This document shows positions 24,625 through 48,438 of a DNA stretch of 64,000 nt, one piece after another (position 1 is the first letter of the stretch; the number at the start of each line of letters is the position of its first letter). The DNA lies in IMG/VR virus record IMGVR_UViG_3300043446_004613, positions 1 through 64,000 of that record, one strand, 5' to 3'. A model generated the notes under the pieces. The model was not told where the DNA came from. It saw only the letters and a list, made by a program, of their open reading frames with translations, and did no database searches. Made by a program: the position numbers and the translations under genes.

Positions 24625-27600
24625 TCACGGCTCAAAACGCATGGCGCTGAGCACTTCATCGTACCATTTGCTGTAATGGATACCGATCCGCTCGATCACT
24701 TTTGCCTCTTCTTCTGGCGGGACACTGCTGGCCGCACAGCGCTCAAGGGCTGAGTCGAGATCACGAAGCATGGCCGCCGCGCTGTTCGGTGTCTCACAGT
24801 TGACGTCCTGAGCCGCGTTGAGCCAAGTCTTGTCGCGATAGTTGTACACCCGCACAACAGCTTCTACAGTGTTTCCGCCAAACAGCCAGAGATGGATGGC
24901 GTGCTGATTTCCGTCCGGCGCTTTGATGCCTTTGATCCAGCTGCGCGTCATTGCCGACTCGGTGTTGTTGAAGATAAAAACTTCATGTTTTTCACCGTTC
25001 TTGGGTACGCTCCAACCAAGCCGCTGAAGCTCTGTCAGCAGCGGATTCGCATCCAAGTTGCCGATAATTCCTTCGGGATCGTCAGGATCAGAAGATTCAG
25101 CTACCGGCCCTTTGGCCAGCGCTTTAGCACGGGCTTCTAGTGCGTCAATGCCGTTGATTAAATCGTAAAATGACAGGCTGTGCTCGTGCTCCATATCGCG
25201 CCAAGCCATACCATCAGCCAGCCAGAACGTGACATCGTAGATCGTATTCGCGTCGTCTGTTGCTATGGAGCCGCGACGGCTGATACCGAGCATTACCTCG
25301 CGCTGACGTCCGCTGAGTTCATTTCGCGGCCCGCAGAATATCTTGTAGATGAGATCAGCTTCGCGGGTGTAGCCGCGCTGTTTTAGCATGTCGCGCAAGT
25401 TCAGTAGGTGCTCAGCCCCCTCAGCAGATGGTTCATCAAATGATTCTGCGTTCTCGACGATGCGCGGTTGCGTCCAACGCTTTATGCAGGCGTTCAATGT
25501 ATCCGCCAGTTGTGGCAGGTCGCAGGTAACTTCAAAATGTGTCGGCATGTACGCCGAGTCGAAGAAGTACGCTAAGTAGATGTGATAGGCGTACTCGCCA
25601 GCCGCTGGTTTTGTGCGGCGGTCACGATCCACGTAAATGTAGCGAGCCGGATCGTTCTTGCCACGGCCCTGATAAATCAGTTTTTTCCACTCAAGCGTAA
25701 AGCGATCATCATAGTAGCGCACCGGCTCGAACCCAAGCCGAGTAAGCAGCGCACTGGCTTCCTCTTCCTGCGAAAATTGCTCCTTGTAGCGTTCAAGGTC
25801 GCCAGTGTCATCGACGTCAGCAGCGCTCTCTTCGACGGCTTCTTCGTAATCTGCCGGGAATAGTTCAGCGGAGCGCTGGTACACGAGCGATCGGATGTGT
25901 TCAGCCTCCGGGCTTTCGTAGGAGATGTCGTTGTTGTCGATGTACTGGGAGGACACTTCAGATGCAAGTTCGTCCGCCCGGCGCGGCGTGAGATCACCGC
26001 GTTTGTTCGCCTGTCGGTCAAATTCAGCAACGGCCTGCTGGGCCAGCAGCTTGTACGCGTTAGCCACTTCGGCTGCGTAGGCATCAACACTGGCCTGTGC
26101 GTCTACATCCTCACTTTCCGTGACGCTCACCTCTGGAGGCACAGTGAAGTACAAACCGAAATCGCCATCGCTGAACGGAGCGTAAAACTCGAATTTACGT
26201 GCTTGAGGGCATGCAGAACGGATAGCCAGTACACCGTCTTTTTTGGCTTTATCCGCAATAGCGTCATACTCTTTGTCCGGCATATCATACGTAAGTTCAA
26301 GCGGACTGTTCCACTCCATAAGATATATCGTGCTGGGAGTCGGGTTGCTTTCACTGTTCGGCGGAAACGCCGCTCGGCAGTAAACATACTCGTAGCCTGC
26401 TTGTTTCAGGTTACCGGCAGCCTCTTTCAGCGAAAATGCAACGGGAAGTTTGTCGATGTAGCCAGCTACATCGTCATCAGGAAGCTCAAAGCTTTCACGA
26501 ACCGGCTTGCGCGGAAAACGGACAAGTTCGTCACGCATGCTCGTGTCCCAGCGGCGAATTTCTTCTTCAGGCTCGTCATGTAAAAAGGCTAGTGACTCGA
26601 TGTCCGTTTCCCACCCGGCATCACGCATTGTCTTGATCCACTTCTGGTGAAACTTAGACTTACTGCCTTCATCCGGTAACGCAGTACCGGTTAGCTTTGT
26701 GGAGGTCTGGTCGGCGAGTTCACCAAGCTTTGCCAGCCATTTCCGGGCTACACCGGCTTTGCGCATCGATTTTGGCACGTACAGGCGGTCTATGTGAAAC
26801 GAGTCTTTGTTCGGTGTACCGCTGATCTTAACCCCGTTAGGCAGCGTCCAGTGATAATCTATCTGCACGGTGCCAGCGTTGTCTATTTCCTCAGCGTCCG
26901 TGCGCGTGGCCATAGCGGACATGGCCTCAATAAAAGGACTCTGGTAAACACTCATCTGGCGCTGAATGAACGGCTCGGGATCATCTTCTGATTCTTTGAT
27001 GTGCGCAACCATGCCGGGATGTTCGTTGAATACATCGGCACGCTTAGACGCGACAGTTGTATTCTGACTGATGAGCCACTCTTTAGGCGGAGGCTCTGAT
27101 GGTTGGAACAGTCGCTCTACATCATCAACATCTGTCTGCGTGAAACGATAAACGCCGATACGTTGGTCAACCGCAAAACCCTTCAGATCAATCATCTCGA
27201 TATTGAAATTAGGATAACGGTCGATTCGATGGGTGATACGTGTCGGGTAATAGTAGCAAACACCTCTACGATCGAGCTTAGGTGCTACGTACCAGCGATT
27301 CAAAAACTTCTGCGCCCGCTTATATTCATCCTTGTTTACGACGTCAACTGGAACCTCTGTATCGACATATTCCTGCGCATTGACGTCATCTTCCTGCGAC
27401 TCGTAGGTATTCACGTAGTTCATCCGAGACTCAGGCGTCAGCTGTGCTTTTGAGATCAGAAGAGAAAAGCCGGTTCCGGTAACATGCTTCCACGGCTCCA
27501 TCTTAATTCTATACGATGTAAGCTTGTGATCGGTACAAAACTTTTCCAGCTGATTGCGGAAAAACTCAGTTTCAAGCGGCTTGCCGTTTTCATCTTCCGC

Positions 27601-28737
27601 CCAGTAGCTGAAACCTTCGACCATAACCCATTCGACATAGCTGCTGACACGCTTGTGCGCCAAGCCGTAGTTGGTCAAGTCGTTGAGCAAGTCACCAAGG
27701 TCATGGACGTTCTCGATGTAAGTGTCCGGCGCGTCCAAATCCGCACTCTCTTGTACCACGTCGTTCGTCATCTCAATGGTGCCTGTGATACCAGTGTACT
27801 CACGGAGCGCCGCACAAAACTTCTTGAAATGCGCCTTACAGGCAGGCATGTCTTCCACAGGCGGCGCTTCGTCCGTCCAGCCCCGGTCAGGCGCGTTTAG
27901 ATAGTAGCCGCCGTAAAGTTTCAATGTCGGCTTAGGGAGCGCACCAATGTCGACATCTTCTGGATACTCAGGAAACTCAACCGTAAAGCGCCAGCCTGAG
28001 TAAGAGTCGTCCTCGTGTCGCACGACATAGCTGTCAAAATCAACGTAATGATCATTCTGACCTGCGAAGGTGCGGGTCAGGATGCTTTTAGGATCGTTGA
28101 TTTCATGCAAAAAGTTGCTCAACTGATTGGGTGTCTTGAAATCCAGCGTATGGCTGTCGACGTAGTCCTGCGCATCGACGTCATCTTCAGACTCGATTAT
28201 GTTAAGCTTGAACCACTCTTTAAGCGCATCCGTGCCGGTAAATTCGATCGACACGTCCAAGACGCGTTTACCAAGCTCGCTGACAAACTGGTAAGGATCA
28301 ATGCGAGGCTTGAAGTCTTTGAAGAACGGCTCCAGTGTACCGCTTGTGGTGCTGAGCCATTCATCAGTGCAGTCGATGATCCGTTGCGCCATCTGGGTAT
28401 TGCGGGCCGGGGCGTCGTTGGATAGGTAAACACTGCATACACGTTCACCACTGTCACCGTGGCCCTCGTCATTTACGTATAGACCGGCGTTGGTCAGCAT
28501 CATGATGACGTTTGTTTCAATATTTTCAACATCGCGGGCCAGCTGATTCCAGTCGACGCCTATCTGCGCCTCAGCAGCGTTTTGTTGAATCGTGTCTTCA
28601 TCTGACGTGTGGATGTGACAGCCAAAGCGGATGCGTGATAGATCGCCGATCCGTGTTTTGGCTTTAAGCCACGACACGTACTGATCAGGATCATCAAAGT
28701 TGTTTACAACATTTCCGCCGTCATCCATAATAAACAA
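24625..28737 (-). CDS. 1370-aa modular polyprotein (about 10 cassettes, one GNAT-like)
   Basis: Nine x-x-E|S(N) acidic linkers; IDRLYVPKSMRKAGVA GNAT motif. Confidence 0.75.
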   Translation of the reverse strand: MFIMDDGGNVVNNFDDPDQYVSWLKAKTRIGDLSRIRFGCHIHTSDEDTIQQNAAEAQIGVDWNQLARDVENIETNVIMMLTNAGLYVNDEGHGDSGERVCSVYLSNDAPARNTQMAQRIIDCTDEWLSTTSGTLEPFFKDFKPRIDPYQFVSELGKRVLDVSIEFTGTDALKEWFKLNIIESEDDVDAQDYVDSHTLDFKTPNQLSNFLHEINDPKSILTRTFAGQNDHYVDFDSYVVRHEDDSYSGWRFTVEFPEYPEDVDIGALPKPTLKLYGGYYLNAPDRGWTDEAPPVEDMPACKAHFKKFCAALREYTGITGTIEMTNDVVQESADLDAPDTYIENVHDLGDLLNDLTNYGLAHKRVSSYVEWVMVEGFSYWAEDENGKPLETEFFRNQLEKFCTDHKLTSYRIKMEPWKHVTGTGFSLLISKAQLTPESRMNYVNTYESQEDDVNAQEYVDTEVPVDVVNKDEYKRAQKFLNRWYVAPKLDRRGVCYYYPTRITHRIDRYPNFNIEMIDLKGFAVDQRIGVYRFTQTDVDDVERLFQPSEPPPKEWLISQNTTVASKRADVFNEHPGMVAHIKESEDDPEPFIQRQMSVYQSPFIEAMSAMATRTDAEEIDNAGTVQIDYHWTLPNGVKISGTPNKDSFHIDRLYVPKSMRKAGVARKWLAKLGELADQTSTKLTGTALPDEGSKSKFHQKWIKTMRDAGWETDIESLAFLHDEPEEEIRRWDTSMRDELVRFPRKPVRESFELPDDDVAGYIDKLPVAFSLKEAAGNLKQAGYEYVYCRAAFPPNSESNPTPSTIYLMEWNSPLELTYDMPDKEYDAIADKAKKDGVLAIRSACPQARKFEFYAPFSDGDFGLYFTVPPEVSVTESEDVDAQASVDAYAAEVANAYKLLAQQAVAEFDRQANKRGDLTPRRADELASEVSSQYIDNNDISYESPEAEHIRSLVYQRSAELFPADYEEAVEESAADVDDTGDLERYKEQFSQEEEASALLTRLGFEPVRYYDDRFTLEWKKLIYQGRGKNDPARYIYVDRDRRTKPAAGEYAYHIYLAYFFDSAYMPTHFEVTCDLPQLADTLNACIKRWTQPRIVENAESFDEPSAEGAEHLLNLRDMLKQRGYTREADLIYKIFCGPRNELSGRQREVMLGISRRGSIATDDANTIYDVTFWLADGMAWRDMEHEHSLSFYDLINGIDALEARAKALAKGPVAESSDPDDPEGIIGNLDANPLLTELQRLGWSVPKNGEKHEVFIFNNTESAMTRSWIKGIKAPDGNQHAIHLWLFGGNTVEAVVRVYNYRDKTWLNAAQDVNCETPNSAAAMLRDLDSALERCAASSVPPEEEAKVIERIGIHYSKWYDEVLSAMRFEP

Positions 28738-28740
28738 AAG

Positions 28741-29052
28741 TTAGTCCCAAATTGAAGCCATGTTCCGTTTGAGGCGCTTTATGGCGGTGTCCACCTGAAC
28801 CTCGTCATCAAGTTCTTCACAGGCAATGCGGAGCAAGGCGCGGTTGATCACGTGATCGGGAATATTGCCGATCACGGATTGAGACAAAGCTCCGGCCTGT
28901 TGCGCCTGTTCCCGCAGGAATTTGGCATGATCGAGAATATCACGGACATCGGCGATAAGCCACGCGTCATTGGTGAAATGTTCCATGCCAATGGCGCTTG
29001 GGTCATCAAGAGCGTCGTTCTCGACCAGTTTACGGACATATAGCGAACTCAT
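28741..29052 (-). CDS. LLE-type tagged protein
   Basis: MSSLYVRKLVE|NDALDDP; TAGTTA at 29057-29062. Confidence 0.6.
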   Translation of the reverse strand: MSSLYVRKLVENDALDDPSAIGMEHFTNDAWLIADVRDILDHAKFLREQAQQAGALSQSVIGNIPDHVINRALLRIACEELDDEVQVDTAIKRLKRNMASIWD

Positions 29053-29066
29053 GTTCTAACTATCGT

Positions 29067-29882: not shown

Positions 29883-30015
29883 AGGTGTCTTCTGTCAATA
29901 CAGGCGGCAGCGGAAACAAGTCCTTCGCCTCACTCAGACGGGGCTGTTCCGGGGTCAAACCGAACGCTTCACATACGACTGCGTCCGGCACGTTGTTCGA
30001 CTGCTTTGTGCTCAT
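29848..30015 (-). CDS. Small hypothetical protein
   Basis: Follows the early promoter. Confidence 0.4.
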   Translation of the reverse strand: MSTKQSNNVPDAVVCEAFGLTPEQPRLSEAKDLFPLPPVLTEDTYEREPDRKPAS

Positions 30016-30023
30016 GGCCGTAA

Positions 30024-30050
30024 TGTACATACAAGCGTAATTCGGTCAAC
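30024..30050 (-). promoter_or_regulatory. Early sigma70-like promoter (variant)
   Basis: AAAATTTTAAGTTGAC...TGTATGTACATT. Confidence 0.5.
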
Positions 30051-30107
30051 TTAAAATTTTAATAAAAAGCTTGTGCGAAAAAGCGGATCATGCTGTTCTT
30101 TTAGTAG

Positions 30108-30437: not shown

Positions 30438-30664
30438 TGAAGTGGCCGGAACCAGCCTCATACCAGCTGTTTGATGGTACGAACTGCGGGAATGTGCTCG
30501 TGATCCGTGGCCGGGTAGTTCATACTACCTGTGACGCGTTCAAGCGCTTTTTAGGGCGCAAGTTCGACGCGGTTCCGCTGGAATTCAAAGCGGGTAGTTA
30601 CAACGATGGCTGTCAATCCGAGCAATCTGAAGAAAAGCACGCCGATACCGGAAGACCCAACTGA
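30437..30664 (+). CDS. Hypothetical protein
   Basis: TAATG coupling with the upstream gene. Confidence 0.4.
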   Translation: MKWPEPASYQLFDGTNCGNVLVIRGRVVHTTCDAFKRFLGRKFDAVPLEFKAGSYNDGCQSEQSEEKHADTGRPN

Positions 30665-33503
30665 CATCTCACAAGATGCGTTGGATACGGTATTGGATCG
30701 CGTTACTACCGTATGCTACCCGAAAGGAACTCGGGTTCGTATCTCTTCAAAAGTCCCGTCGCAGCGTCTGCGCGGAAAGACCGGCACAGTTACCGGCGCA
30801 TCCCAAACCATGTGCTGGGTGGCTATCGACGATTTTGTCGCTGCTGGTGACCCCGATCCATTTTACTTCGTGGATTCAGACGTTGAGCCGCTGAACGAAG
30901 CAGAAACTACAGACGCTCCAGAGAACTATTTGCCGAGCAACGATTACATCAGCGTGCTGGGCAACCTCGGCTACAAGTTTAACGGCTGGCGCTGGGAGAA
31001 GCTGCTGCCTTTTGGCCCTGCCACGCTGTTCATTTCGGTCAAAGACAACAGCAGCGAACTGTTTGGTGCTCAGGCTTTCATCGATGTCCGCTACGTCAGA
31101 TACGGCGTGTGTGAACGGGTGCAGAGCATGAGCGTGGATGTCTACGACGTTGTAGACGTGTTGCGCCAGATCGAACAGTTTGCGCTCAGCGGTGATGTTC
31201 AGACCTTTACCGACAAGCTCAAGGCCGCCAAGTTTAGCGACATACCCGTGACGGAACCAAACCGGCTGTTGAATCTGTTTGGCGAGTCGATCATGGAAGC
31301 TATCGACCCGGATGACCCGGAGAGCTACATCGATACGCTAAAGCAGCACGAAAGCGTGATTGATGCTTTCGTGCAGAAGGGCTGCACACTAAGTCGGCGC
31401 ATGTCTGCCGACCGTCCGAGTTATGAACTAGGGCTGATCCACGAACCAGACAAGACAAAGCCTTGGGTCTATTACACCGTGGTGCTTGAACCTGACAGCC
31501 CGACACGGTGGAACGTTTATGCAGGCGGTTACCGAGAATACACTGACTCACCTGATGACACTTACAGTCAAGGTTTTGACATCGACGGCACATGTTCGAT
31601 TGATGTCACTGCCCCGCTTGAGCCGCAGGTAGCCTCAATTCTAGCTGAAATCACAAAGCACGACGGCGAACTCAAGGATCGCGCTGTAGACGAGTCCGCA
31701 CCAGATAATCTCGACGCCACACCGGAGACTATCCAGCACGTCGTTGATACGACAGTCCTGATTCCTGATGAGAGCGATCCAAGTTCAGAAGACTGTCGCG
31801 AGTGCAAGGAACACGGCGGTGCGCCGGAAGGTGACAGACCATTCAAAGGTGATAACCTGTGCTGGGATTGTTACCGGCATCTGTATCCTGAGCCTGATGC
31901 AGAAGATGACGCCGTAGTTGAGAGTACTGAAACATGCCCTGATTGTGCCGGATCGGACGGTCGGCAAATCAATGGTACGTGGTACGTCAGCAGTCCTTGT
32001 GATGACTGCGGTGGTAGCGGCTTTGATGCGTCTGTCGATGGAGAATGTGCCCACTGTAAAGGTGTAGGTGAGCTACCCTGCTGTCGCTGTGAAGGTACAG
32101 GCAGCATAGCAGAATCAGTCGAGAAAGACCCCGACGTTGTAGATTACACGACGTACGCAGATAGCACACCCGACTTCAACTTTGTCCAGCTGATTGATCC
32201 GCAGAAAGTGCGCAAGCTGCTGCTCTCTTTTGGTTACCGGGCCGTCAACCTATCGCGCAGTCCGCGCACAACCGGTCTATGTGGGAGCGCGATCCCGAGG
32301 ACGCAAGAACGCCAGCAGGCGCTACAACGTGAAGAGCATCACGAAGAAGCGTACTTTCGCCATCACCTTGAACAAGGGTTGTTGAAACTTTACCCCAATC
32401 AGGCCGAGGAAGTATACAAGCCATTTGTCGGTAACATCTACAAGCTGTACCACAGTGTCATCATACATGTCTGGTGCATGGCGGAAAAACAGGCGATCTA
32501 CTTCGACATCCTGCCGGTCGACTCCAACATCTGGAAAAAAGGTAAGCGCACGCTTCCGTCTGATGACGTAAGTCGCTACGTGCGTGAAACTGAATCGGAG
32601 GACGATCCGCAGACTTACGTCGATGCCGCTAAACCGAACGTATACACTCTCTACGGACAAGTGGAGAACTACGACGCGCCGGTTGCACTGGGCGTGTTTA
32701 CCAGCTTACAGGCTGCGGTCGACCGTGCTCGCGAGCGGGATGCCTACGCAGAATTCGCTACCGTATGGGCGGACGAAGAGGTCATCAACTCGCTTGAAGA
32801 CTGGGATAAGCCGACCGTAAAAGCGGTACGCTACAGCGGCGTCAAGTACCTCATCACTCCAAACTGGCAAGTGATCCGCTCAGAAACACCTGACCGTATC
32901 ATCAGCGGTGTGCGCTACAGCAATCCTCCCGTGCAGGAAAGTGCAGACGATAACGTTGATCTCGACGCAGAGCAGTACGTTCAAACCACGGCAAATATAG
33001 ATGAATTCCTATCTGGCCTAGGCTGGTCACGGGATGCCGGATCATCGTACTACCGCAAACGGTTCCAGCTGCCTACCATTTACCGACTCGGTGGCCTTGT
33101 TTTTACAGCTATTGAGTTCATTCTAGCTGTTGATCTGGAAAACGATCTGGCTGCACCGTGGTTGACCCTCTACTTTGACAACGAGCAGGGGAATAATCTC
33201 ATGTCGCGTTCGTGGCGACTTCCGATGCAGGAAGTGAAGGGTGAAACTGAAGACGATGAGGATTGGTTAAACCGTGATGTCACGCTTCGGCGCTTCGCAC
33301 ACGCGCTTCCAAGTGTCATCGCTAACGTTGACTGGCCGCGTACGAATAAGCGGCTTGCCCGCGAGATCGAACAGGACATCCAGCCAACCGCAGCTGTCAT
33401 GGGACGTCACCTTACGCTTAAAGCCAGCAGCCGCGTGGAGCAGGCTGTGCAAGAACTAATCGATTGCCTCAGCCACAAGGCAAAAACACTCTACGGTACT
33501 TAG
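30606..33503 (+). CDS. 965-aa modular polyprotein (KOW/SH3-like, Zn-finger and DnaJ-CXXCXGXG cassettes)
   Basis: Seven [VIL]-x-E linkers; TAGTTA at 30595-30600. Confidence 0.75.
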   Translation: MAVNPSNLKKSTPIPEDPTDISQDALDTVLDRVTTVCYPKGTRVRISSKVPSQRLRGKTGTVTGASQTMCWVAIDDFVAAGDPDPFYFVDSDVEPLNEAETTDAPENYLPSNDYISVLGNLGYKFNGWRWEKLLPFGPATLFISVKDNSSELFGAQAFIDVRYVRYGVCERVQSMSVDVYDVVDVLRQIEQFALSGDVQTFTDKLKAAKFSDIPVTEPNRLLNLFGESIMEAIDPDDPESYIDTLKQHESVIDAFVQKGCTLSRRMSADRPSYELGLIHEPDKTKPWVYYTVVLEPDSPTRWNVYAGGYREYTDSPDDTYSQGFDIDGTCSIDVTAPLEPQVASILAEITKHDGELKDRAVDESAPDNLDATPETIQHVVDTTVLIPDESDPSSEDCRECKEHGGAPEGDRPFKGDNLCWDCYRHLYPEPDAEDDAVVESTETCPDCAGSDGRQINGTWYVSSPCDDCGGSGFDASVDGECAHCKGVGELPCCRCEGTGSIAESVEKDPDVVDYTTYADSTPDFNFVQLIDPQKVRKLLLSFGYRAVNLSRSPRTTGLCGSAIPRTQERQQALQREEHHEEAYFRHHLEQGLLKLYPNQAEEVYKPFVGNIYKLYHSVIIHVWCMAEKQAIYFDILPVDSNIWKKGKRTLPSDDVSRYVRETESEDDPQTYVDAAKPNVYTLYGQVENYDAPVALGVFTSLQAAVDRARERDAYAEFATVWADEEVINSLEDWDKPTVKAVRYSGVKYLITPNWQVIRSETPDRIISGVRYSNPPVQESADDNVDLDAEQYVQTTANIDEFLSGLGWSRDAGSSYYRKRFQLPTIYRLGGLVFTAIEFILAVDLENDLAAPWLTLYFDNEQGNNLMSRSWRLPMQEVKGETEDDEDWLNRDVTLRRFAHALPSVIANVDWPRTNKRLAREIEQDIQPTAAVMGRHLTLKASSRVEQAVQELIDCLSHKAKTLYGT

Positions 33504-33506: not shown

Positions 33507-34220
33507 ATGCAGCTGAGCGAAGGTTTTAAGCAGCCAGAGAATTTTGACCCCGTAGCGGACGGTTCCGGGTGGGTCATGTATGCCGGTGCGAATGATTGGG
33601 AAGTCGGCACCACGGCAGTCAGCGTCATTTTTCCGAGCGACGAACAGAATCAGCGTGTCTGGATGACCGTCAAGCAGCGCTTCGACGGCGATGCCGAAGC
33701 ACCGGTTAAAGAGCATCCCGCGATCAAGGAGCATGGCGATAAGGCATGGCGTACGTGGAAGCGCGAAGCGATTGCCGCCTACCGTAACAAGAACAACGGG
33801 ACGCGCACATGGATGGACGCCTTCAAAGCGGCGTTGAAAACCAAGGCCATGAGTCCTTACGTCAAGGACTGGGGTATTGAGCGTACCAAGTGGGATAACG
33901 TCAAGGAGCACGCAGGGGTGATCGTCGCCAAGCTTTTGGAATCGGATGTCGATGATCCGTCGCCTAACCCCGACGAGATTGACCGACTTCTGCCGACCAA
34001 GACTTTCACCATGAAAGGCAGTAGCTTGCTGCATGCTCCCGGCCTGATTGATTTTGCCAAACGGCGCTGGCGCGAGCGCAGCCGTAAAGCTAAGCAGAAC
34101 GCGCTCGACATCTTGAAGGCATGGCAGCTACCACAAGAGGACGCCGAAGCGATTCTCAACGGAAAAGCAACGATAGAGACGCAAGGCGACGATGCCGTCG
34201 TGACCATTCAAAAGTATTAA
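33507..34220 (+). CDS. Two-cassette LLE-tagged protein
   Basis: Internal IVAKLLE|SDVDDPSPNPDEID; TACTTA at 33497-33502. Confidence 0.65.
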   Translation: MQLSEGFKQPENFDPVADGSGWVMYAGANDWEVGTTAVSVIFPSDEQNQRVWMTVKQRFDGDAEAPVKEHPAIKEHGDKAWRTWKREAIAAYRNKNNGTRTWMDAFKAALKTKAMSPYVKDWGIERTKWDNVKEHAGVIVAKLLESDVDDPSPNPDEIDRLLPTKTFTMKGSSLLHAPGLIDFAKRRWRERSRKAKQNALDILKAWQLPQEDAEAILNGKATIETQGDDAVVTIQKY

Positions 34221-35807: not shown

Positions 35808-36468
35808 CTTTATTCCTGATTACGGCATTACAGGCGTCGTAGTTGCACCGTACCTTTTTGTAAAGCGCTGCGGGCTTGAACCCAGTGCCGGTCGAAATCC
35901 AAGTTTCATAGTAGCTGCGGGTAACCGTATCGGGCCGTTCGGGCGCTTGAATGGTTCGGATGTAGCTTGCACTAGCCCACCAGAAGTTACCGGAAAAGAA
36001 CTGACCGTTGAAATTTATGCCGCAGCAGTTGGCAGCACTTAACCGGCGCAGGCACGTTTGATAATCGGTAAGGCAGGCAAAATTCATCAGATCGCGCCAG
36101 CCTTTGACGCCAGCAGCACTAGGACGTGTTAAACCTGTCTCAGACACTACACCTTTTGAGTGGAAATATAGAACACGAGCGTCATGTAGTAAGCAGTAGT
36201 CGTGAAGCAGCTTTAGCGTAGGGTACTCGAACTTGTTGCCTCTACCAGAGTGTATACGCAATTTATCGTAGCCGCTAAACATCTGGCCGAATTCCACTAA
36301 AGCAGAGGCGTCTTTTGCCTGAACCCCGCAGACTACTGTCGAAGCTTCGTCATACAGACCGCTCTCTTGCATTAAACGGAACTGTTCAGAGACTATTTCT
36401 TTCCAGTTGTTTACAAGATACACGTGGTAGAAAACAGCAATAGGCTCATGTATACTCAGGCTTATCAT
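35761..36468 (-). CDS. Putative glycosyltransferase-like protein
   Basis: FEYPTL, VLYFHSKG, WR..M and FSGNFWWA...YI motifs, as in large-virus glycosylation clusters. Confidence 0.6.
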   Translation of the reverse strand: MISLSIHEPIAVFYHVYLVNNWKEIVSEQFRLMQESGLYDEASTVVCGVQAKDASALVEFGQMFSGYDKLRIHSGRGNKFEYPTLKLLHDYCLLHDARVLYFHSKGVVSETGLTRPSAAGVKGWRDLMNFACLTDYQTCLRRLSAANCCGINFNGQFFSGNFWWASASYIRTIQAPERPDTVTRSYYETWISTGTGFKPAALYKKVRCNYDACNAVIRNKAIWLQVPGGLQAEEP

Positions 36469-38419
36469 CTGGAAAATTCTTCAGATTTACGGAAAGGTTA
36501 ACGTACCAACGCGGGTACGTCTTGTCTGCTGCTTCACCTACCCAAAGTTTGGAAGACGTGACTTTCATCACCCCGTTTTCTTCCAGCCATTGGATAACGA
36601 ACGCTTTGAATCGCCGGGCAAAGTCGTCCTTATCGTACGGAAAATAGAGGGTCGCTGTGACTAAGCCACCCTTGCCGCTGATGTCGATCGCATCGTAACG
36701 TACGCCGGTTGGGTGCCACTTCCAGAGCGCTTCGCAGACGTCTTTATCCCAGTCGGTTTGAGCCACCACCTGCGAGATCACGCTATCTGGATCGTCAAGG
36801 CTCTCTCCCATCGCTAGTGCCGACTTGAACGTATTGAACTCAATCGTTGGATTCTTACGCAGAACCCCGATGATCTTCACGCTACCCATCTGAACAAATC
36901 CTTTGTCCTCTAGCCACTGTTCAACGTAGTCAACAAGTTGCTTACGCCAGTCAATAAAACCGTAGCGACCATTCTGCATACCAGTCAAACGCGGCAAGCG
37001 TAGGCTTTCGTCGCGCTGGCATTGAAGTGTCCAATGGTACGCCCCTTTTAGAGCCATGAACGGTTCGCGATGGACTGAAACGCTACTGTAAAACGGCGTG
37101 AGCATCCGGCGCAGTTCACCTTCCAAGCGCTCGTACTTGGGCTGTTTGCTGTCATCTTCGGGATGAATGTAGGCAGTGACATCGTCAACATCTTCGGACT
37201 CGTTCACGTAAGGAAAAGAGTCTTCAAATTTAGAGACATCGACGTAAAGATAGATTGGAGCTTCCAGCTGGCTTGCTTGTACAAGAGTGGTCGCTGCTAT
37301 GCCGTTTGTGCGTAAGGCGCTGAAGACTGCTGGACTTTTAATGTTCAGCGGAAACCGGTACGTATTGAGCGGCATCATGCTGGTTTGCTCGCGCTTGCGC
37401 TTGTACAGCATCGCATGTCGAAAAGCGTCGGCCTGCTGATAAGGCGTCAGAGCTACCCACAGCGCAGCCGCGTCATTAACGGTAGTGATTACATTAGACT
37501 GATTAGGGTTTATAGCGCGGAAATCGATGCGGATTTGACCCCGAAAGCTGTTCAAAAAACTACCCAGAGTTGCATCCGGTGAATCAACATCCAAACTCTC
37601 GTAATTGTAACCTAAATACTTATCGGGCGTCAGCTTCAGCTTACGCTTGCTTTCAAGCTCGCGGCGGATAAAGGCCCGAACTTGATCCATTGCGTTGTCC
37701 GCAACTTTCCAAACGTCAATACCGCCATACAGATCAAGGCCGCCCGGTGACCACCAAGGCCCGCCGTCCGTAGGCCGTTCCATAAGTGTGGACGCGTAGT
37801 AGCTGGATACAAACTGACCTTCATCGAATTTCGTGATGTCGTAAAAATCGACAAGAGGCTTAGGTTTGCCTTCGGCGTAGCTATCTTTCCAATGGAGCAC
37901 AACACGGAATTTCCGCTTATCGTACGCTGTGCCGGGTGCTTCGTTCGTCACTTCGATGGAAGGTTCGTAATCTTCCAGAAAAGCACTTGGATCATCCAAG
38001 TCCTCCGACTCGCGCACCGGACGACCTGTTTTAGCGACGTGGATCGCTAGGATGAACTCAAGGGCTTCGTCAAACGACTTGCACGCCTTGGATTCACTGT
38101 CGCGGAATCCGGCAACAGCCACCCACGGGTAATCCTGCCAGTTTTTACGCGCCTCTTCGGACGGAGCATCCGCAGCATCTGTCGTGTAAATTTCACCAAT
38201 GAACGTTTGGTAACTTTGCGTACCAAATGTTATCTCGTTTGGCTTACCGGCAGGAGCAGGTGTTCCGGGTACCTTTCTGTAGACGTTCCAGTGCTGACCT
38301 TCCTGTTCTAATTCAATGTCTGGATAGCGCGTTTTGGCCAAACGATCGATTTCGCCCAACGGGTCAAAATCATCGTCGGCGCTCTCAAGGATGCGGTTTG
38401 CAAGTATACGTCCAGTCAC
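36446..38419 (-). CDS. 657-aa modular polyprotein (5 cassettes)
   Basis: N-terminal LANRILE|S plus four E|S acidic linkers; TACTTA at 38424-38429. Confidence 0.75.
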   Translation of the reverse strand: MTGRILANRILESADDDFDPLGEIDRLAKTRYPDIELEQEGQHWNVYRKVPGTPAPAGKPNEITFGTQSYQTFIGEIYTTDAADAPSEEARKNWQDYPWVAVAGFRDSESKACKSFDEALEFILAIHVAKTGRPVRESEDLDDPSAFLEDYEPSIEVTNEAPGTAYDKRKFRVVLHWKDSYAEGKPKPLVDFYDITKFDEGQFVSSYYASTLMERPTDGGPWWSPGGLDLYGGIDVWKVADNAMDQVRAFIRRELESKRKLKLTPDKYLGYNYESLDVDSPDATLGSFLNSFRGQIRIDFRAINPNQSNVITTVNDAAALWVALTPYQQADAFRHAMLYKRKREQTSMMPLNTYRFPLNIKSPAVFSALRTNGIAATTLVQASQLEAPIYLYVDVSKFEDSFPYVNESEDVDDVTAYIHPEDDSKQPKYERLEGELRRMLTPFYSSVSVHREPFMALKGAYHWTLQCQRDESLRLPRLTGMQNGRYGFIDWRKQLVDYVEQWLEDKGFVQMGSVKIIGVLRKNPTIEFNTFKSALAMGESLDDPDSVISQVVAQTDWDKDVCEALWKWHPTGVRYDAIDISGKGGLVTATLYFPYDKDDFARRFKAFVIQWLEENGVMKVTSSKLWVGEAADKTYPRWYVNLSVNLKNFPDDKPEYT

Positions 38420-38423: not shown

Positions 38424-38441
38424 TAAGTACCTACGTAGTTA
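38424..38441. promoter_or_regulatory. Back-to-back TACTTA(-)/TAGTTA(+) motifs
   Basis: 4 and 7 nt upstream of the divergent starts at 38419 and 38449. Confidence 0.6.
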
Positions 38442-38448: not shown

Positions 38449-39003
38449 ATGAATAAGAAAGCAGCCCAAATTGTAAGCAACCTTCTTGAGTACGGTGTCG
38501 ATCCCGACGCGCCCCGTCCGGGCGGCCCGGAAGACCCGTGGCGTCAGTCCAGCGGCCCGCTGCCGCCGTTCACCGTAAAAGCCCGCCCCGGTCACGAAGA
38601 TGAAGTGATTGACGAGATTCCAGCAGAAGAAGATGAAGCTCCGGTCAAGCCTGCACCAAAGCCTAACAAGCACTTGGGGCGCTTCAACATCACTTTTCCG
38701 CCGTCAATGGAATCGGTGCCAAGTGCCCGCTCTTTGCTGCATGAACTGGGCGGCCACTACTGCACCACGTGCCGCAAGCCGACGGAAGGCTCATTCGACC
38801 CCAAGAGCAAAAAGGTCGTCTGTAAACACTGCGGTAACGAACTTGTCTATCCCAAGTCTTCGTCACTTCGTTCACGCGAGGTCGTTCACGGAAAATCTGC
38901 CAATGAATCGTTGAAGAAAGCCTGCTGGAAAGGTTACGAGGCTGTCGGCACCAAAAAGAAAGGCGGGCGCACGGTGCCAAACTGCGTCCCGAAAAAGAAA
39001 TGA
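38449..39003 (+). CDS. LLE-tagged protein with Zn ribbon and CWKGY...VPNCVP module
   Basis: IVSNLLE; CTTC..CKHC; ACWKGYEAVGTKKKGGRTVPNCVP as in T4-like phage proteins. Confidence 0.7.
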   Translation: MNKKAAQIVSNLLEYGVDPDAPRPGGPEDPWRQSSGPLPPFTVKARPGHEDEVIDEIPAEEDEAPVKPAPKPNKHLGRFNITFPPSMESVPSARSLLHELGGHYCTTCRKPTEGSFDPKSKKVVCKHCGNELVYPKSSSLRSREVVHGKSANESLKKACWKGYEAVGTKKKGGRTVPNCVPKKK

Positions 39004-39254
39004 AGACTATTCTTACCGCCGCTGTAGCGCTGACCTTGCTGATCTCAGCAGGCTGCGCATCACACAACGCTGTCCTTGAGACAGACGGCAAGTACCTGTA
39101 CCGGCTGGCTAGTGCCAAGCCCGGCGAGGTAAAGCTGTACGTGCGCGTAGGTTCGGAGTCAAAAACGAATCGCTACTACATGAAGACGCTGGAGTCAGAG
39201 ATTCACACAAACCAGCTTCCCATGTTCCGGTCAACGCCGTGGCCTATTGAATGA
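39000..39254 (+). CDS. Lipoprotein
   Basis: Signal peptide plus ISAGC lipobox. Confidence 0.6.
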   Translation: MKTILTAAVALTLLISAGCASHNAVLETDGKYLYRLASAKPGEVKLYVRVGSESKTNRYYMKTLESEIHTNQLPMFRSTPWPIE

Positions 39255-40486
39255 TGGAAACGCGCCACCAGCGCCTCATGGCGATATTGACGCCACTTCA
39301 GCGAGTCATGCTCGATCTGGACGTGGCCGTCACTGGTGTACCGATAGAGCAGGCCGTCACGCAATACCACCATTACCCGAAAACGGTTGAAGACTGGCTC
39401 AACGAACCCGGCGGTAACCCGGAGTGGTACTTGTCTGACGGAGGGTATAGCCGGATAATCTGGATGCCCTACGCGGATAACGTGAACGACAACCACCTAT
39501 TTTTGACAGACAACAGCACGACTAAAGCAAAAGCTCGCTGGGAGAACGCGCTGACTCAACGCAAAGCTGCCTTAAACCTGCTTCACGCTGAACTAGGCAG
39601 ACTAGAAGAAAGCAGTGATGACGATCCAAATACTTTCCTAACGCATTACCGGCCACTTCCGACGGTCAGGCTGCATACCGGCGAGGTTGTTCCAAAGTAC
39701 TGGCGGTGCTTAGACACCATTTGGTACTGCGGTGGTCAGGATGACGATGACTGTATACGTGAAGATGAAATCGTAACTGTCGATCCTAGTGAATATGAAA
39801 GTTTCAGGTTCAAGGCCGACGAGTTGGCGTTCAACGAGCACGCTTCACGCTACGGCCCGTGGAACCGGGATGACTTTGAACCGCTGACGTTGGAAGAGAT
39901 TGACGCTATGAACTTAAAAGAGTCAACTGAACGTCCTGAATTTAAGCCCGGTGCTTTTGGTCGCCCCAAGCGCAAAGACCCGCGCTATCCGACTGATTTG
40001 CGCTATCCTAACGATCCGCACGCACAGGTAGTTCATGAGCTTGGCGGCAAGCTGGTTTACGCGCCGCTTCCGTCACGCGCCAAGTGGAACGCCATGCTTG
40101 CAGCCTACGCACCCGGCTGTGGCTCACCAACACCCTATCCCGGCACCGGCGGCACCGCCCCATGCGGTTCTAAGGTGGAAGGTAAACTGTTTCTGTGCCC
40201 GCACTGTGAGTCATCAAACCTAACAACGGAATCGATCACGAGCGTGCTCTGCGAAGATGGCGCTTCACCTTTCAGCAAGCAGCGCGTCAAGCTCCAGTAC
40301 CGGCCCTATACGTTCGGAGAGGATTGGAAATGGTTTTGGGTGCTACTGCCGGAAGACGGACGGGCTGCGCTGGCTAACGGCGAAGCTGACACGCGGGCAG
40401 CTGCCTCAGTGCAGGCACGGCTAAAGGCACGTCAACTGCGTATGATCGTTGATAAGGTCGAGGTTGTTTTCTCGCACAAAGACTAA
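39251..40486 (+). CDS. 411-aa modular polyprotein
   Basis: LEE|SSDDDPNTFL, LKE|S and TTE|SITSVLCED linkers. Confidence 0.65.
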   Translation: MMETRHQRLMAILTPLQRVMLDLDVAVTGVPIEQAVTQYHHYPKTVEDWLNEPGGNPEWYLSDGGYSRIIWMPYADNVNDNHLFLTDNSTTKAKARWENALTQRKAALNLLHAELGRLEESSDDDPNTFLTHYRPLPTVRLHTGEVVPKYWRCLDTIWYCGGQDDDDCIREDEIVTVDPSEYESFRFKADELAFNEHASRYGPWNRDDFEPLTLEEIDAMNLKESTERPEFKPGAFGRPKRKDPRYPTDLRYPNDPHAQVVHELGGKLVYAPLPSRAKWNAMLAAYAPGCGSPTPYPGTGGTAPCGSKVEGKLFLCPHCESSNLTTESITSVLCEDGASPFSKQRVKLQYRPYTFGEDWKWFWVLLPEDGRAALANGEADTRAAASVQARLKARQLRMIVDKVEVVFSHKD

Positions 40487-41312: not shown

Positions 41313-41316
41313 AGCA

Positions 41317-42618
41317 CTATTGTTGATTAGACGGCACTTCGCAGCGGTGTGACCCGGTTTCTATGTCATCGTGTGAAATTAGCTTACCACAATTTTCGCA
41401 CGGATACGTAGGTGTTGAGTCGAGATGTCTGTACTCCAGCTTATGTCCGTTAGGGCACTCGTAGCAGTCGAGATCGTCAGGGTCACCGGCTTCAATACCG
41501 TCGAAACCTGCGCGTAGATAGCTGAAATCATTCAGCAAGCTACCTGTTTCGCCGCAAGCAGGGCAGCGAACAATAGGAAAACTGACACCACCGTCTACGT
41601 CTGGCTCAACAAATTCCAGTCTATGCGGAACTTCAAGCGTCCTTACGTCAATATTTTCAATATCACGCTCGCTAGGATCGTCAATATCTTCCAACAAGCC
41701 TGAACGGTAGACAGCTTCTTTCAATTTTGTATACGTCGCCGCATCAAAAGCGTCGCCAACATCAAGGGTAAGCGCTGCTACCGGCATTTTTGAGCGAAGA
41801 TGATCCAAAATATCCAGAGGGACGCCGCGCAATCGTAGAGCATCCCAGTCAATGTCTGCTCCGGCTTCGAGCACGTGTCGGTTTTCCTTCAGTGCCGGTA
41901 GAATAAGGCTTTCATAGCGCCACATTGCGTCTGAAACGCGCAAAAGGCACTCTAAAACCGGGGTAAGCTGCCGTCGATTGTGCGCTCTTTCCAGAGCCGA
42001 GCTAGTGCTCTCAAAAATTTTAGCCGTGATGCTTGCTGCTTTAGGTAGATTTTCGGCTAGGCGTTTGGCAAAGGCAGGTGCCGCAGCGCCGGTTAACCGG
42101 ATATGGTGACCGTAAACTGCATCTGGAGCTTGAAGAACGTTGCTTGTGGGGTAACCAAGTGCTTCGGCTTCCTCAATCAACTCTTCAACGATGCCGCCGA
42201 CGTCGTGTACACGGCTCGCTGCTGCCGCGATGGCGAGGCGGTCGGTACCGTTCAAGCTGCCCAGTGCGTTTACAGGCGTCCATTCGACCTTAGTGACGTC
42301 ACCACCACCCGGTTTGGCCTTGGTGTTAGGTTCAACGATGGCGTAGTAGAGCGTGACCGGCAGTTTCCGCGCCGCATGGCTGGCCAAAAAGAGCGGTTGA
42401 GGGTCGACATCCATGCCTGTCTCTTCTCTGACTTCACGCTTGCAGGATTCGACACCTGATTCGGCACCGTTGGCATGACCTCCCGGTATGCTCCAACGTC
42501 CGATTTCATCGGCAACCAGTGCAACTTCCAGTCTGTCGTTTGTTTTGCGCAGGACAACGCATAGGTACGATTGATCGTCCGTATCGGTCATCTTCTGGAT
42601 CAAAGCTTCTGCGCTCAT
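41317..42618 (-). CDS. Nudix hydrolase plus degenerate dTMP-kinase-like domain plus Zn-finger cassette
   Basis: GGH....ES....KREVREETG Nudix box; LL..SD.......ILPALK...VL; LLE|DIDDP; CPAC, CPNGH and CENC. Confidence 0.75.
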   Translation of the reverse strand: MSAEALIQKMTDTDDQSYLCVVLRKTNDRLEVALVADEIGRWSIPGGHANGAESGVESCKREVREETGMDVDPQPLFLASHAARKLPVTLYYAIVEPNTKAKPGGGDVTKVEWTPVNALGSLNGTDRLAIAAAASRVHDVGGIVEELIEEAEALGYPTSNVLQAPDAVYGHHIRLTGAAAPAFAKRLAENLPKAASITAKIFESTSSALERAHNRRQLTPVLECLLRVSDAMWRYESLILPALKENRHVLEAGADIDWDALRLRGVPLDILDHLRSKMPVAALTLDVGDAFDAATYTKLKEAVYRSGLLEDIDDPSERDIENIDVRTLEVPHRLEFVEPDVDGGVSFPIVRCPACGETGSLLNDFSYLRAGFDGIEAGDPDDLDCYECPNGHKLEYRHLDSTPTYPCENCGKLISHDDIETGSHRCEVPSNQQ

Positions 42619-43751: not shown

Positions 43752-43754
43752 AAG

Positions 43755-46400: not shown

Positions 46401-46402
46401 AG

Positions 46403-47319: not shown

Positions 47320-47322
47320 AAA

Positions 47323-48438
47323 TTAAACAGCAGGCGGTCGCTTCACGATCGCGTTCCAAATTTGCTTTTCCTGCTCTTCGGTAAAGCCGTGCAGGTGGTA
47401 CGCTAACTCTGTCTCCACCCCCGTGCGGTAATCCTGACTTACGCCGTCGGAATACCATACGCCGACGTGAAAGTGACTGGATGACTGGCGCGTCGCGCAT
47501 TCTTTCTTTAAGAACTTGATCGCTTTATCGGCGGCAGTGATACCTTCAGAATAATCAAATTCATCCGGCTCCATGCTGACACCTTCCTCGTCTATCCAAC
47601 CCGTTTCTTCATAATCTCCGTTCGCCGCACTTTCGGGGCTTACTTTATAGTACGAAATAGTGATACGCGGGCCGGGTAAATCTGGCATGCTGGCGACAAA
47701 CTCAGCCGGGTCGTCGGGATCAGCGCTCTCGCCGATAAATGAATCGACATGCCAGCTTGAAGCCAGTCCGCGCAGCGGCTCACACAGACGCATGAAGTCA
47801 TCTAGGTACGCCTGACGGGATTTGCGCCGCTTCATCATAACACATACCTGTTTGGCAACAGCGTAGACGGCGTCCCGACGCGGGATGTAGTCCGCATCGC
47901 TCTCGAACGGCACTATGACAACAGCGTCACCGTAGTATCCGACCGTGAAGATCAATTTCAATTCGCCACCCGCGACATAGTCACGTGGATTACCGGTATT
48001 ATGATTCGTGTGGGACGAAAGCCGGAACTCGTTGTAGCGCGTACCGTAGTCAATGAGCAGCCGCCAGCTTTCGCTTCCGTAGTGCCCGCGTGAGTATTCT
48101 TCCTCCTCCATACCCCAGTTGGAAGGTAGTTCTAGGTCGTGAATATAGTCAATCGGGCTGACGTCTTCTTCCGACTCGCCAAGGTTATTCGGATGCAGCG
48201 GGTCAAACCAGATGCCGCAGTCGCCGCAATCAACCAAGCCTTCATCATCCGGCTCGGTCACCTTAGTGCTCTTGCATGCCGGGCAGTGACCGGGAAAAAT
48301 CCGGTCAAGGGCGGCCTGCGGATCGAACGCATCGACCGCGTTGTCGAGCAAACTGCGCACAACGTCGCGAGCTTCAGCAATCGTCACCGAACGCTGAATC
48401 GAAGCTAGAAAATCGAGATTGGCAGGTGTCTTAGACAT
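47323..48438 (-). CDS. 371-aa modular polyprotein (3 cassettes)
   Basis: VVRSLLD; LGE|SEEDVSPIDYI; IGE|SADPDDPAEFV; Zn ribbon. Confidence 0.7.
   Translation of the reverse strand: MSKTPANLDFLASIQRSVTIAEARDVVRSLLDNAVDAFDPQAALDRIFPGHCPACKSTKVTEPDDEGLVDCGDCGIWFDPLHPNNLGESEEDVSPIDYIHDLELPSNWGMEEEEYSRGHYGSESWRLLIDYGTRYNEFRLSSHTNHNTGNPRDYVAGGELKLIFTVGYYGDAVVIVPFESDADYIPRRDAVYAVAKQVCVMMKRRKSRQAYLDDFMRLCEPLRGLASSWHVDSFIGESADPDDPAEFVASMPDLPGPRITISYYKVSPESAANGDYEETGWIDEEGVSMEPDEFDYSEGITAADKAIKFLKKECATRQSSSHFHVGVWYSDGVSQDYRTGVETELAYHLHGFTEEQEKQIWNAIVKRPPAV

Follow-up and report, generated by a model that had tools for sequence, protein, structure and literature searches.

An uncultivated freshwater jumbo phage joins domain-sized modules into long proteins with one standard 18-residue junction, which also sits at the start of many small proteins and looks like a cutting and packaging signal for the phage's T4-type head protease, although support for that role is only indirect. 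The junction (aliphatic-x-Glu, then Ser/Ala, an Asp-rich stretch, Pro, x-x, Tyr/Phe, Ile/Val) occurs at least 29 times in this 211-kb genome. It was first noticed in the window considered here, that is, the whole 64,000-nt stretch spanning positions 1 to 64,000 of IMG/VR record IMGVR_UViG_3300043446_004613, where a first-pass annotation made from sequence alone described five otherwise unrelated long ORFs divided by a common linker. It proposed that these were effector polyproteins loaded into the prohead, cut into 30 or more proteins by a prohead protease and delivered with the DNA. The observation of a shared linker is confirmed and proves to be wider than originally described; the interpretation placed upon it is partly supported.

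The junction and its distribution

Translation of the five ORFs showed the linkers at the positions originally listed, and a hidden Markov model built from 22 of them hit only these five ORFs strongly in the 275-ORF proteome. In a wider alignment of 29 instances, P1 is Glu in 29/29 and P3 is Leu, Val or Ile in 25/29, with exceptions such as Thr in N-T-Y-E|S and R-E-T-E|S and Asn in Y-N-Y-E|S. P1' is Ser in 19 and Ala in 3, the three acidic columns are Asp in 20-21 of 29 and almost never Glu, Pro is present in 20/29, Tyr/Phe in 20/29 and I/V/L/M in 28/29. A loose regular expression finds 24 matches in the proteome against 3.8 +/- 2.1 in residue-shuffled proteomes (maximum of 10 in 200 shuffles), whilst [VIL]-x-E-S occurs at 4.8 per 1000 aa in the five ORFs against 1.0 elsewhere. 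Among 1.84 billion representative proteins, a profile of the junction finds 28, of which three look like unrelated repeat proteins and nearly all the others are multi-copy proteins up to 2343 aa long.

Several details of the first-pass annotation required correction. The motif is not confined to five ORFs, as it also occurs in seven others within the window (described below) and in at least six ORFs outside it. Several of the listed sites (VVE|S, LKE|S, VDE|SAPD and IVE|NAES) are bare x-E-S with little or no acidic tail and score weakly. The domain labels are also weak: searches of the five ORFs against Pfam and PHROGs gave only sub-threshold hits, to a DnaJ zinc finger (E 0.002) and KOW (E 0.09), and Pfam found no GNAT, which is supported only by a language-model look-alike search. 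That the five ORFs are otherwise unrelated does hold at the sequence level. All-against-all BLASTP of 30 segments found no shared domain family apart from one weak pair, and our first impression of a repeated HicA-like module was therefore not supported at that level.

At the DNA level the linkers use varied synonymous codons, including both Ser codon families, and the median longest shared exact run is only 6 nt. The motif is therefore kept by selection on the protein and not by recent DNA repeats. This bears on the possibility that the junction is merely a favoured flexible spacer, a neutral scar of domain fusion spread by module shuffling and without signal function. Modules do shuffle at junctions, and acidic, Pro-rich linkers are common spacers. 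However, conservation at the protein level despite free synonymous codon choice, columns that are invariant or near-invariant across homologues of 39-47% identity, and occurrence at N-termini, where no spacer is needed, make this the least likely of the explanations considered.

Modular proteins and their small, tagged counterparts

In the five long ORFs the junction separates modules of roughly 100-190 aa. The largest (24625..28737, minus strand) encodes 1370 aa, although it is on record as a 1367-aa protein (P0132) that starts three codons further in, at the ATG at 28728. It comprises about 10 modules separated by 9 junctions, with Glu at residues 182, 330, 446, 582, 748, 874, 970, 1098 and 1214; module 583-748 is probably GNAT, and homologues of 1070-2191 aa carry different module sets. 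An alignment of its first 470 residues, built with MAFFT for modelling, was misaligned, with module-3 fragments pulled onto module 1. The 965-aa protein (30606..33503, plus strand) has junctions at Glu 98, 231, 503, 663 and 778 and weaker sites at 363 and 439, with two small zinc-finger modules at 364-503; homologues of 1054 and 1282 aa gain or lose whole modules.

The 657-aa protein (36446..38419, minus strand) begins with an N-terminal leader plus junction at Glu 12, followed by internal junctions at Glu 137, 274, 407 and 539, with Glu invariant in 11 homologues. In an AlphaFold2 model of this protein the four internal junctions coincide with segments of pLDDT below 50 (132-151, 277-294, 400-427 and 533-554) lying between folded domains, as the first-pass annotation had set as a test. 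A Foldseek search of the model against the PDB gave nothing at E <= 0.001, so that an ‘effector’ role for the modules, resting as it does on weak domain calls, is mostly unproven. One module of this protein (residues 275-407; 37199..37597, minus strand) has been inserted exactly at a junction, with the junction duplicated; it is absent from all 10 homologues, and its relatives sit in the 1370-aa family of other phages.

The 411-aa protein (39251..40486, plus strand) has a junction at Glu 120 and weaker sites near residues 234 and 325, and relatives encode its first and last modules in two separate genes of 282 and 190 aa. In the 371-aa protein (47323..48438, minus strand), with junctions at Glu 88 and 237, the middle module is absent from the 316-aa homologue, which has a different N-terminal module. 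Thus, relatives keep the junctions, but whole modules are gained, lost and swapped, and genes split or fused, exactly at them.

The junction also follows an 8-13-residue N-terminal leader (I-V-x-x-L-L-E) in about ten smaller proteins, which the first-pass annotation did not see and which provide the best argument for a T4-like targeting signal. A regular expression for the leader matches 13/274 N-termini against 1/231 control windows; leaders end in L-L-E, I-L-E or L-V-E, and the same leader is seen across the clade. In the window, leader plus junction is found in a 114-aa protein (938..1282, plus strand; Glu 12), in a 145-aa protein (19509..19946, plus strand; Glu 13) with a C-terminal DnaJ/Anti-TRAP-like zinc finger that falls below the Pfam cut-off, and in a 103-aa protein (28741..29052, minus strand; Glu 11) that heads the transcription unit of the 1370-aa gene, from which it is separated by a 3-nt gap. 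A 184-aa protein (38449..39003, plus strand), which heads the unit containing the 411-aa gene, has the N-terminal leader (Glu 14) and a D-P-D-A-P stretch.

Other tagged proteins combine modules. A 237-aa, two-module protein (33507..34220, plus strand) has a leader-like junction at Glu 145 (33930-33983), and only its C-terminal module is shared with relatives. A 433-aa NUDIX hydrolase (41317..42618, minus strand) has a leader-like N-terminus and a junction at Glu 310 (41647-41700) preceding a zinc-ribbon module; two relatives' 313-aa NUDIX proteins lack this module, whilst a third relative (457 aa) carries a different C-terminal extension. A 275-aa protein (61328..62155, minus strand) has an internal junction at Glu 141 (61691-61744). 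Tagged proteins of the genome include Phage_lysozyme, NUDIX, 2H-phosphoesterase and probable GNAT domains, which are the sort of enzymes that phages are known or proposed to package.

The head protease, its scaffold and the capsid protein

The genome encodes a T4 gp21-family prohead protease (Peptidase_S77; E 1.5e-19, 67 bits, above the cut-off) in ORF 127484-129178, fused to a coiled-coil scaffold. The capsid protein is gp23-like, with Pfam Gp23 recognised in relatives and 25-29% identity to T4-like capsid proteins; a search for an HK97-type protease found none. The rule cited in the first-pass annotation, that gp21 cuts after Glu in L/I-x-E, is correct, and Asp at P1 blocks processing (PMC9026906), whilst the related SPN3US protease prefers Ser at P1' (PMC10052503). 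The junctions match this chemistry, with an invariant Glu even though the neighbouring acidic columns are almost exclusively Asp or non-acidic.

The same site is found in the expected substrate. The protease-scaffold protein has six [VIL]-x-E-S, or 10.6 per 1000 aa against a background of 1.0, and its scaffold part has the highest density of this site among long proteins. Seven h-x-E-S/A sites in the scaffold part are kept in 87-116 of 116 homologues, two of them as conserved islands in variable stretches, and the protease starts with L-I-E at residue 7, as T4 gp21 has L-I-E at residue 9. The capsid protein is less informative: its N-terminus gave no clear conserved site, and the candidate site is not conserved in one relative. 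The acidic half of the junction, which the first-pass annotation called a docking motif, is absent from the scaffold and capsid-protein sites. It is thus not a general requirement of the protease or needed for the presumed cleavage, and T4 has nothing like it.

These last features leave room for a possible but unlikely alternative, in which the junction is an uncut, short linear docking motif recruiting each module or small protein to a phage or host hub (for example a core or portal protein, or a cytoplasmic factory), with the long ORFs acting as intact, multivalent beads-on-a-string proteins. The acidic/aromatic half is the most distinctive part of the motif, and the 1370-aa protein has lost the Glu of its N-terminal leader but keeps the acidic motif. 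Junctions are disordered, as such motifs are, and the N4 virion RNA polymerase is an example of a giant protein packaged uncut (PMC5512222). Conversely, Glu-only at one position within an Asp-only acidic context points to a Glu-specific protease rather than to charge-based binding, the position after a short N-terminal leader mirrors the T4 targeting and processing signal (PMC9026906), and fission of the same modules into separate genes shows that they do not need to be covalently linked.

Gene context and relatives

The tagged genes share an upstream GTAGTTA signal with sheath, portal, baseplate wedge and adaptor genes, and this signal is absent upstream of the polymerase, ligase, helicase and SbcD genes. 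GTAGTTA lies 11 nt before the start codon of the 114-aa gene, and ATAGTTA 11 nt before the ATG of the 103-aa gene. The signal may be a translation signal rather than a late promoter, it also precedes a radical-SAM gene, and PHROG annotation of genes with the two upstream motifs was too sparse to define expression classes firmly. A probable large terminase gene (48768..50945, minus strand) lies directly upstream, on the same strand, of the block holding the 371-aa and NUDIX genes. This identification rests on P-loop, Walker A and Walker B motifs read in the sequence and an Atlas look-alike score of 0.99 to MJ0330_N / TerL-like clusters, as neither the Pfam terminase families nor a PDB sequence search recognised the ORF.

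It remains conceivable, though improbable, that these are cytoplasmic polyproteins cut by the head protease outside proheads, or by another phage or host Glu-specific protease, to give equimolar sets of small proteins during infection. The region has many small accessory ORFs on both strands, no homology to any known virion protein was found, and the acidic tail is unlike the basic T4 internal proteins. Against this, no second protease was found in the five ORFs or their neighbours, gp21-type proteases are active inside the prohead core (PMC9026906), and the upstream signal is that of the structural genes.

Searches of INPHARED phages with the 1370-aa protein (tblastn, 50,697 phage records), an 881-aa protein (tblastn) and 5 kb of sequence (megablast) found no match, and IMG/VR yielded only one true relative locus. 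The only public runs found to contain the sequence are freshwater DNA metagenomes, with no RNA run among them.

A putative cargo tag for the prohead

We consider it somewhat more likely than not that the junction is a two-part signal used by a clade of uncultivated jumbo phages to load accessory proteins into the prohead and release them there, in effect an expanded T4-like capsid-targeting and processing system whose cargo is concatenated into polyproteins. In this view the first part (an aliphatic residue, any residue, the invariant Glu, then Ser or Ala, preceded at N-termini by a short helix) would be a substrate site for the gp21-type protease and at N-termini would work like the 10-residue T4 capsid targeting sequence. 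The second part, the Asp/Pro-rich stretch ending in Tyr/Phe and Ile/Val, would stay on the new N-terminus, where it probably keeps the site extended and accessible and may also bind a prohead-core partner. Single-module proteins would carry the signal once, whilst the long ORFs would be chains of cargo units, cut into about 30 separate domains in this genome. As every unit has the same junction, whole modules could be inserted, lost or moved between proteins without loss of function. Our analysis establishes the motif and its restriction to this clade, its position between folded domains, module exchange at junctions, the presence of the protease and the conserved scaffold sites; cleavage, presence in the virion, packaging, delivery into the host and any role for the acidic half are inferred, the last being a guess.

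A bolder form of this reading, which we hold more tentatively and judge rather less likely than not, is that the portable, clade-specific tag turns any domain into capsid cargo, with an injected arsenal stored as concatenated cassettes that the head protease separates inside the capsid and that move freely between polyproteins and single genes. This would be the functional counterpart of an RNA-virus polyprotein, but inside a DNA phage head. If the cargo reading is right, the junction provides a sequence rule that predicts, from the genome alone, which proteins of a whole clade of uncultivated jumbo phages are packaged and delivered with the DNA, giving a ready list of about 30 candidate host-takeover or anti-defence domains per genome, most with unknown folds. 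It would also show a way for phages to evolve such arsenals by cassette exchange at a standard junction, and offer a compact tag that could be tried for loading foreign proteins into T4-type capsids, as the T4 targeting sequence already is. Even if packaging fails as an idea, a strictly conserved 18-residue junction found in only about 25 protein clusters out of 1.84 billion needs an explanation.

Comparison with known systems

The closest known system is that of the T4 capsid targeting sequence, the internal proteins (IPI-III, Alt) and gp21. Both have a gp21-family serine protease and a gp23-type head, a short N-terminal leader ending in aliphatic-x-Glu on otherwise unrelated, fast-evolving accessory proteins, a scaffold with many such sites and an L-I-E near the protease's N-terminus. 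What differs here is that the signal also occurs internally, up to at least 9 times per protein in this genome and 11 in relatives, making putative polyproteins, that a conserved Asp/Pro-rich tail with an aromatic residue follows the Glu, and that the protease is fused to the scaffold. The searches described above showed no sequence homology to T4 IPI, IPII, IPIII or Alt, and the proteins are acidic rather than basic.

Polyvalent proteins of phages and conjugative elements (Iyer et al. 2017, PMC5512222) are also long proteins of mosaic, fast-changing architecture; they combine 2-15 unrelated domains, are predicted to travel with the DNA and be released by proteolysis, and include lysozyme and other conflict enzymes. 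They are associated with the portal-terminase packaging system, and here a portal gene is present in the genome alongside the probable terminase gene. The modules of the present proteins are unrelated to each other, but only weak or indirect domain calls were obtained (GNAT, zinc fingers, NUDIX plus zinc ribbon). Polyvalent proteins usually carry known effector domains and their own peptidase domain, most often a zincin-like metallopeptidase, and have no standard junction. Here, no peptidase family (such as the zincin-like, assemblin-like or LonC hub domains) was found in the five ORFs at E up to 0.1, the junction is uniform and matches a trans-acting head protease, and folds are mostly unknown. 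In polyproteins of eukaryotic RNA viruses one ORF is divided, as proposed here, by repeated sites for a single viral protease into separate functional proteins. In contrast, this is a double-stranded DNA phage with ordinary gene expression, in which the putative polyproteins are accessory rather than the replication core and the presumed cutting takes place inside the capsid.

In the giant phages phiKZ, 201phi2-1 and SPN3US (gp175/gp245) a diverged gp21-type protease cuts after Glu, many internal head proteins are delivered to the host, and propeptides are cut at several sites (PMC10052503, PMC9026906). The present phage shows no multisubunit RNA polymerase or other phiKZ marker among the genes examined, and those phages do not have a repeated standard junction between domain-sized modules or an acidic P' motif. 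Their cleavage sites (A/S/G-x-E) have a small residue at P3, and cleavage removes N-terminal propeptides of 20-254 residues, whereas the junctions described here are mostly aliphatic at P3 and the leaders are only 8-13 residues long.

Genome and clade

The window is the first 64 kb of a single 211,113-bp virus record that IMG/VR classes as linear, whose completeness is estimated by CheckV at 93%, and which is found in freshwater DNA metagenomes. The phage is a myovirus that encodes a tail sheath, baseplate wedge, portal, head-tail adaptor, DNA polymerase and NAD ligase, together with a gp23-type capsid protein that is 25-29% identical to those of T4-like cyanophages and Bacillus phage SP-15, and whose relatives carry Pfam Gp23. 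No close relative was found among 50,697 deposited phage genomes. Its protease-scaffold protein, however, has more than 387 homologues on metagenomic contigs of up to 246 kb, and the phage therefore represents a large uncultivated clade. In a 228-kb relative (L015:7796-9271) only a 201-aa Gp23 fragment was called downstream of an intact N-terminal reading frame, and this capsid gene may be interrupted, as in Bacillus phage SP-15, whose match came in two pieces flanking an endonuclease.

A standard junction in five long proteins and beyond

The linkers that a first-pass annotation had read in five long ORFs are present in the translations, and that observation holds. A profile built from 22 of them hits only those five ORFs strongly among the 275 ORFs of the genome, and once instances found later were added, the resulting alignment (A2) comprised 29 junctions. 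Counted back from the presumed cut, the third residue is Leu, Val or Ile in 25 of these and the next position is variable, whereas Glu follows in all 29. Beyond it lie Ser in 19 and Ala in 3, three acidic columns that are Asp in 20-21 and almost never Glu, Pro in 20, two variable residues, Tyr or Phe in 20 and finally an aliphatic residue in 28. A loose regular expression returns 24 matches, against 3.8 +/- 2.1 in shuffled proteomes. The junctions are encoded with free synonymous codon choice, including both Ser codon families, and share only about 6 nt of exact DNA; the pattern is therefore kept by selection on the protein. That the junction is no more than an inert spacer we regard as very unlikely. 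The segments between junctions are mostly 96-187 aa long, with a median near 130, and show no detectable similarity to each other except for one weak pair.

The motif is nonetheless wider than the five ORFs of the first-pass annotation. It also sits at the very start of small proteins, after a leader of 8-13 residues with the pattern I-V-x-x-L-L-E, and this leader pattern occurs in 13 of 274 N-termini against 1 of 231 control windows. Within the window these proteins are ORFs 938, 19509, 28741 and 38449 (named by their first coordinate), plus the 657-aa modular protein itself; outside it they include ORFs 75150, 86492, 87142, 109515, 126396, 132003 and 143887. Internal copies occur in ORFs 33507, 41317, 61328, 132497 and 191200. 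The 1370-aa modular protein departs from this arrangement: its mechanical ORF starts at a TTG (window 28729-28737), the protein collection records a 1367-aa form that starts at the ATG three codons further in, and its N-terminus, unlike that of its orthologues, has the acidic half of the tag but no leader Glu.

Tagged proteins with a recognisable domain are a NUDIX hydrolase, a protein with a C-terminal Phage_lysozyme domain (E 6e-11) and the first of two leader-bearing proteins outside the window with 2H phosphoesterase-type matches. This first one (genome 194157-195473) is a 2',5' RNA ligase-type 2H phosphoesterase (2_5_RNA_ligase2, E 5e-12) with a sub-threshold Acb1 (anti-CBASS) hit at E 0.008, whilst the second (ORF 87142, genome 87142-87552) has only a sub-threshold tRNA-ligase CPD-type hit at E 1.8e-4; they are possible degraders of cyclic-nucleotide signals. 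Module 583-748 of the 1370-aa protein resembles viral GNAT acetyltransferases, but only in a language-model search (score 0.91).

Module exchange among relatives

When a profile of A2 was searched against 1.84 billion representative proteins, 28 were found with E below 0.001, of which three look like unrelated repeat proteins. The rest are mostly long proteins, up to 2343 aa, with 4-11 matched stretches, plus several of 331-640 aa, and many begin with the same leader. The consensus across the clade is sharper than in this genome: aliphatic-x-E-S/A-x-D-P-D-D-P-x-x-Y/F-L/I/V.

Ten homologues of the 657-aa protein (39-47% identity) keep the junction Glu at the same four borders, with all four invariant, but whole modules between such borders come and go. 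The window protein has one extra 133-residue module inserted exactly at a junction, which is thereby duplicated, and one homologue has an extra zinc-ribbon module inserted at the first junction. The relatives of the module inserted in the window protein lie in the second position of the 1370-aa family in other phages, and a module has therefore moved between different polyproteins. Homologues of the 965-aa modular protein are 1054 and 1282 aa long, with different sets of modules between conserved ones. The NUDIX protein has a C-terminal zinc-ribbon module, attached through a junction, that the 313-aa proteins of two relatives lack, whereas the 457-aa protein of a third carries a different C-terminal extension. 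The 411-aa modular protein corresponds, through fission or fusion, to two adjacent genes in relatives, the second of which begins with a leader. Such fission of modules into separate genes is one of the two main observations that count against the most serious rival reading, in which the junction is a docking motif that is never cut; we consider that reading unlikely, though less so than the other alternatives.

Relatives L012 (12268-15713) and L013 (12304-15404) carry two tail-fibre-like genes (409 and 624-739 aa, with repeats rich in Ala, Gly, Thr and Asn) between the homologues of the 657-aa and 965-aa genes, where the window has unrelated small ORFs. In a further relative (L016:3934-5604), just upstream of its protease-scaffold gene, four tandem paralogous small genes each start with a leader-like sequence followed by E-T-G-I-P-D-Y-S; they sit next to the head morphogenesis genes, which recalls the T4 internal-protein genes.

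Predicted structure of the 657-aa protein

AlphaFold2, applied to the 657-aa protein with its 11-sequence alignment, gave a modest model (mean pLDDT 62), whose low-confidence segments 132-151, 277-294, 400-427 and 533-554 are exactly the four internal junctions. They lie between predicted alpha/beta domains of pLDDT 70-90, and residues 2-12, the leader, form a predicted helix. No module matched a solved structure.

A gp21-type protease with matching sites

ORF 127484-129178 has a Peptidase_S77 (T4 gp21) domain (E 1.5e-19) fused to a long coiled-coil, scaffold-like part. It contains six [VIL]-x-E-S, or 10.6 per 1000 aa against a background of 1.0, which is the highest density among long proteins. 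In 116 homologues of 53-78% identity, seven aliphatic-x-E-S/A sites in the scaffold part are kept in 87-116 sequences, and two of them are conserved islands in otherwise variable stretches. The protease starts with L-I-E at residue 7, conserved in 114 of 116 homologues, where T4 gp21 has L-I-E at residue 9.

Published work provides the points of comparison. T4 gp21 cuts after Glu in L/I-x-E, the first 10 residues of IPIII are a capsid targeting sequence, and Asp at the last position of that sequence blocks processing but not targeting; this device may let T4-like phages load varied proteins (PMC9026906). The related SPN3US protease cuts after A-x-E and prefers Ser at P1' (PMC10052503). The Glu-only position of the junction within an Asp-only context, the aliphatic P3 and the Ser or Ala at P1' fit this chemistry, and the asymmetry between Glu and Asp is the other main observation that counters an uncut docking motif.

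Upstream signals and expression context

The 7-mer GTAGTTA is 29-fold enriched just upstream of start codons. With its variants GTACTTA, ATAGTTA and GTATTTA, it lies at an almost fixed 11-16 nt before the start codon of about 30-46 genes across the genome (in the window, for example, at 30588-30594, 38429-38441, 48761-48767 and 927-933). It precedes the sheath, portal, baseplate wedge, adaptor and tail-fibre-like genes; it or a one-base variant also precedes the 965-aa and 657-aa genes and ORFs 33507, 938 and 61328, and it also precedes the first genes of the units that contain the 1370-aa, 411-aa and 371-aa genes. It is not found upstream of the polymerase, ligase, helicase or SbcD genes. Between divergent gene pairs it forms palindromes (TAACTACGTAGTTA), and it is either a promoter giving nearly leaderless mRNAs or a non-Shine-Dalgarno translation signal. 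A probable large terminase gene lies upstream on the same strand as the block holding the 371-aa and NUDIX genes. This places the tagged genes with the structural genes, although that the signal is a late promoter is an inference. A reading in which these are cytoplasmic polyproteins appears improbable, more so than an uncut docking motif.

A second upstream motif, CTGTTCT(T/A), lies 13-15 nt before the start of another 17 genes across the genome (SbcC, a glycosyltransferase and others); in the window it lies upstream of 30108 and 11870-12043. It is often part of TAAGAACAG...CTGTTCTTA palindromes, and may mark a different expression class.

A putative targeting and processing system

The best-supported reading, which we hold to be somewhat more likely than not, is an expanded T4-like targeting and processing system, in which cargo units are marked by a Glu site and an acidic tail, and many are concatenated into polyproteins that the head protease would separate. 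The proposal in the first-pass annotation, that these are cargo polyproteins loaded into the prohead and cut after Glu, is supported only in part. What the analysis itself establishes is the junction, its conservation, the exchange of modules at it and the presence of a gp21-type protease whose scaffold carries like sites; cleavage and a location in the virion are inferred from sequence alone, as is any role for the acidic half, which is absent from the scaffold and capsid sites. Other features sit uneasily with the model: P3 is not always aliphatic, the 1370-aa protein has lost its leader Glu while keeping the acidic half, and one candidate capsid-protein site is not conserved.

In this view the system works like T4 CTS/gp21 cargo loading and like the processing of ejection proteins in phiKZ-type phages, and it resembles the polyvalent proteins of Iyer et al. 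(PMC5512222) in its mosaic architecture. It differs from these three in that one standard junction is repeated up to 11 times per protein, the conserved acidic/aromatic P' half has no counterpart in them, there is no embedded peptidase and there is no homology to known cargo proteins. We therefore treat it as a variation on these known systems and do not assign it to any named family.

Split PKD domains

Elsewhere in the window, two PKD domains (43749-43760, minus strand, and 20990-21018, plus strand) are each split by an in-frame stop between consecutive ORFs in the same frame. In the first, the 881-aa ORF ends in W-D-F-G-D, followed by TAA and one codon and then the ATG of the 378-aa PKD/VWA ORF; in the second, ORF 20356-21003 ends inside a PKD domain, which continues in the 580-aa ORF 21016. 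This is either stop read-through or a domain rebuilt from two chains, and relative L012 has a similar pair of adjacent genes (882 and 369 aa, the latter with a weak PKD hit).
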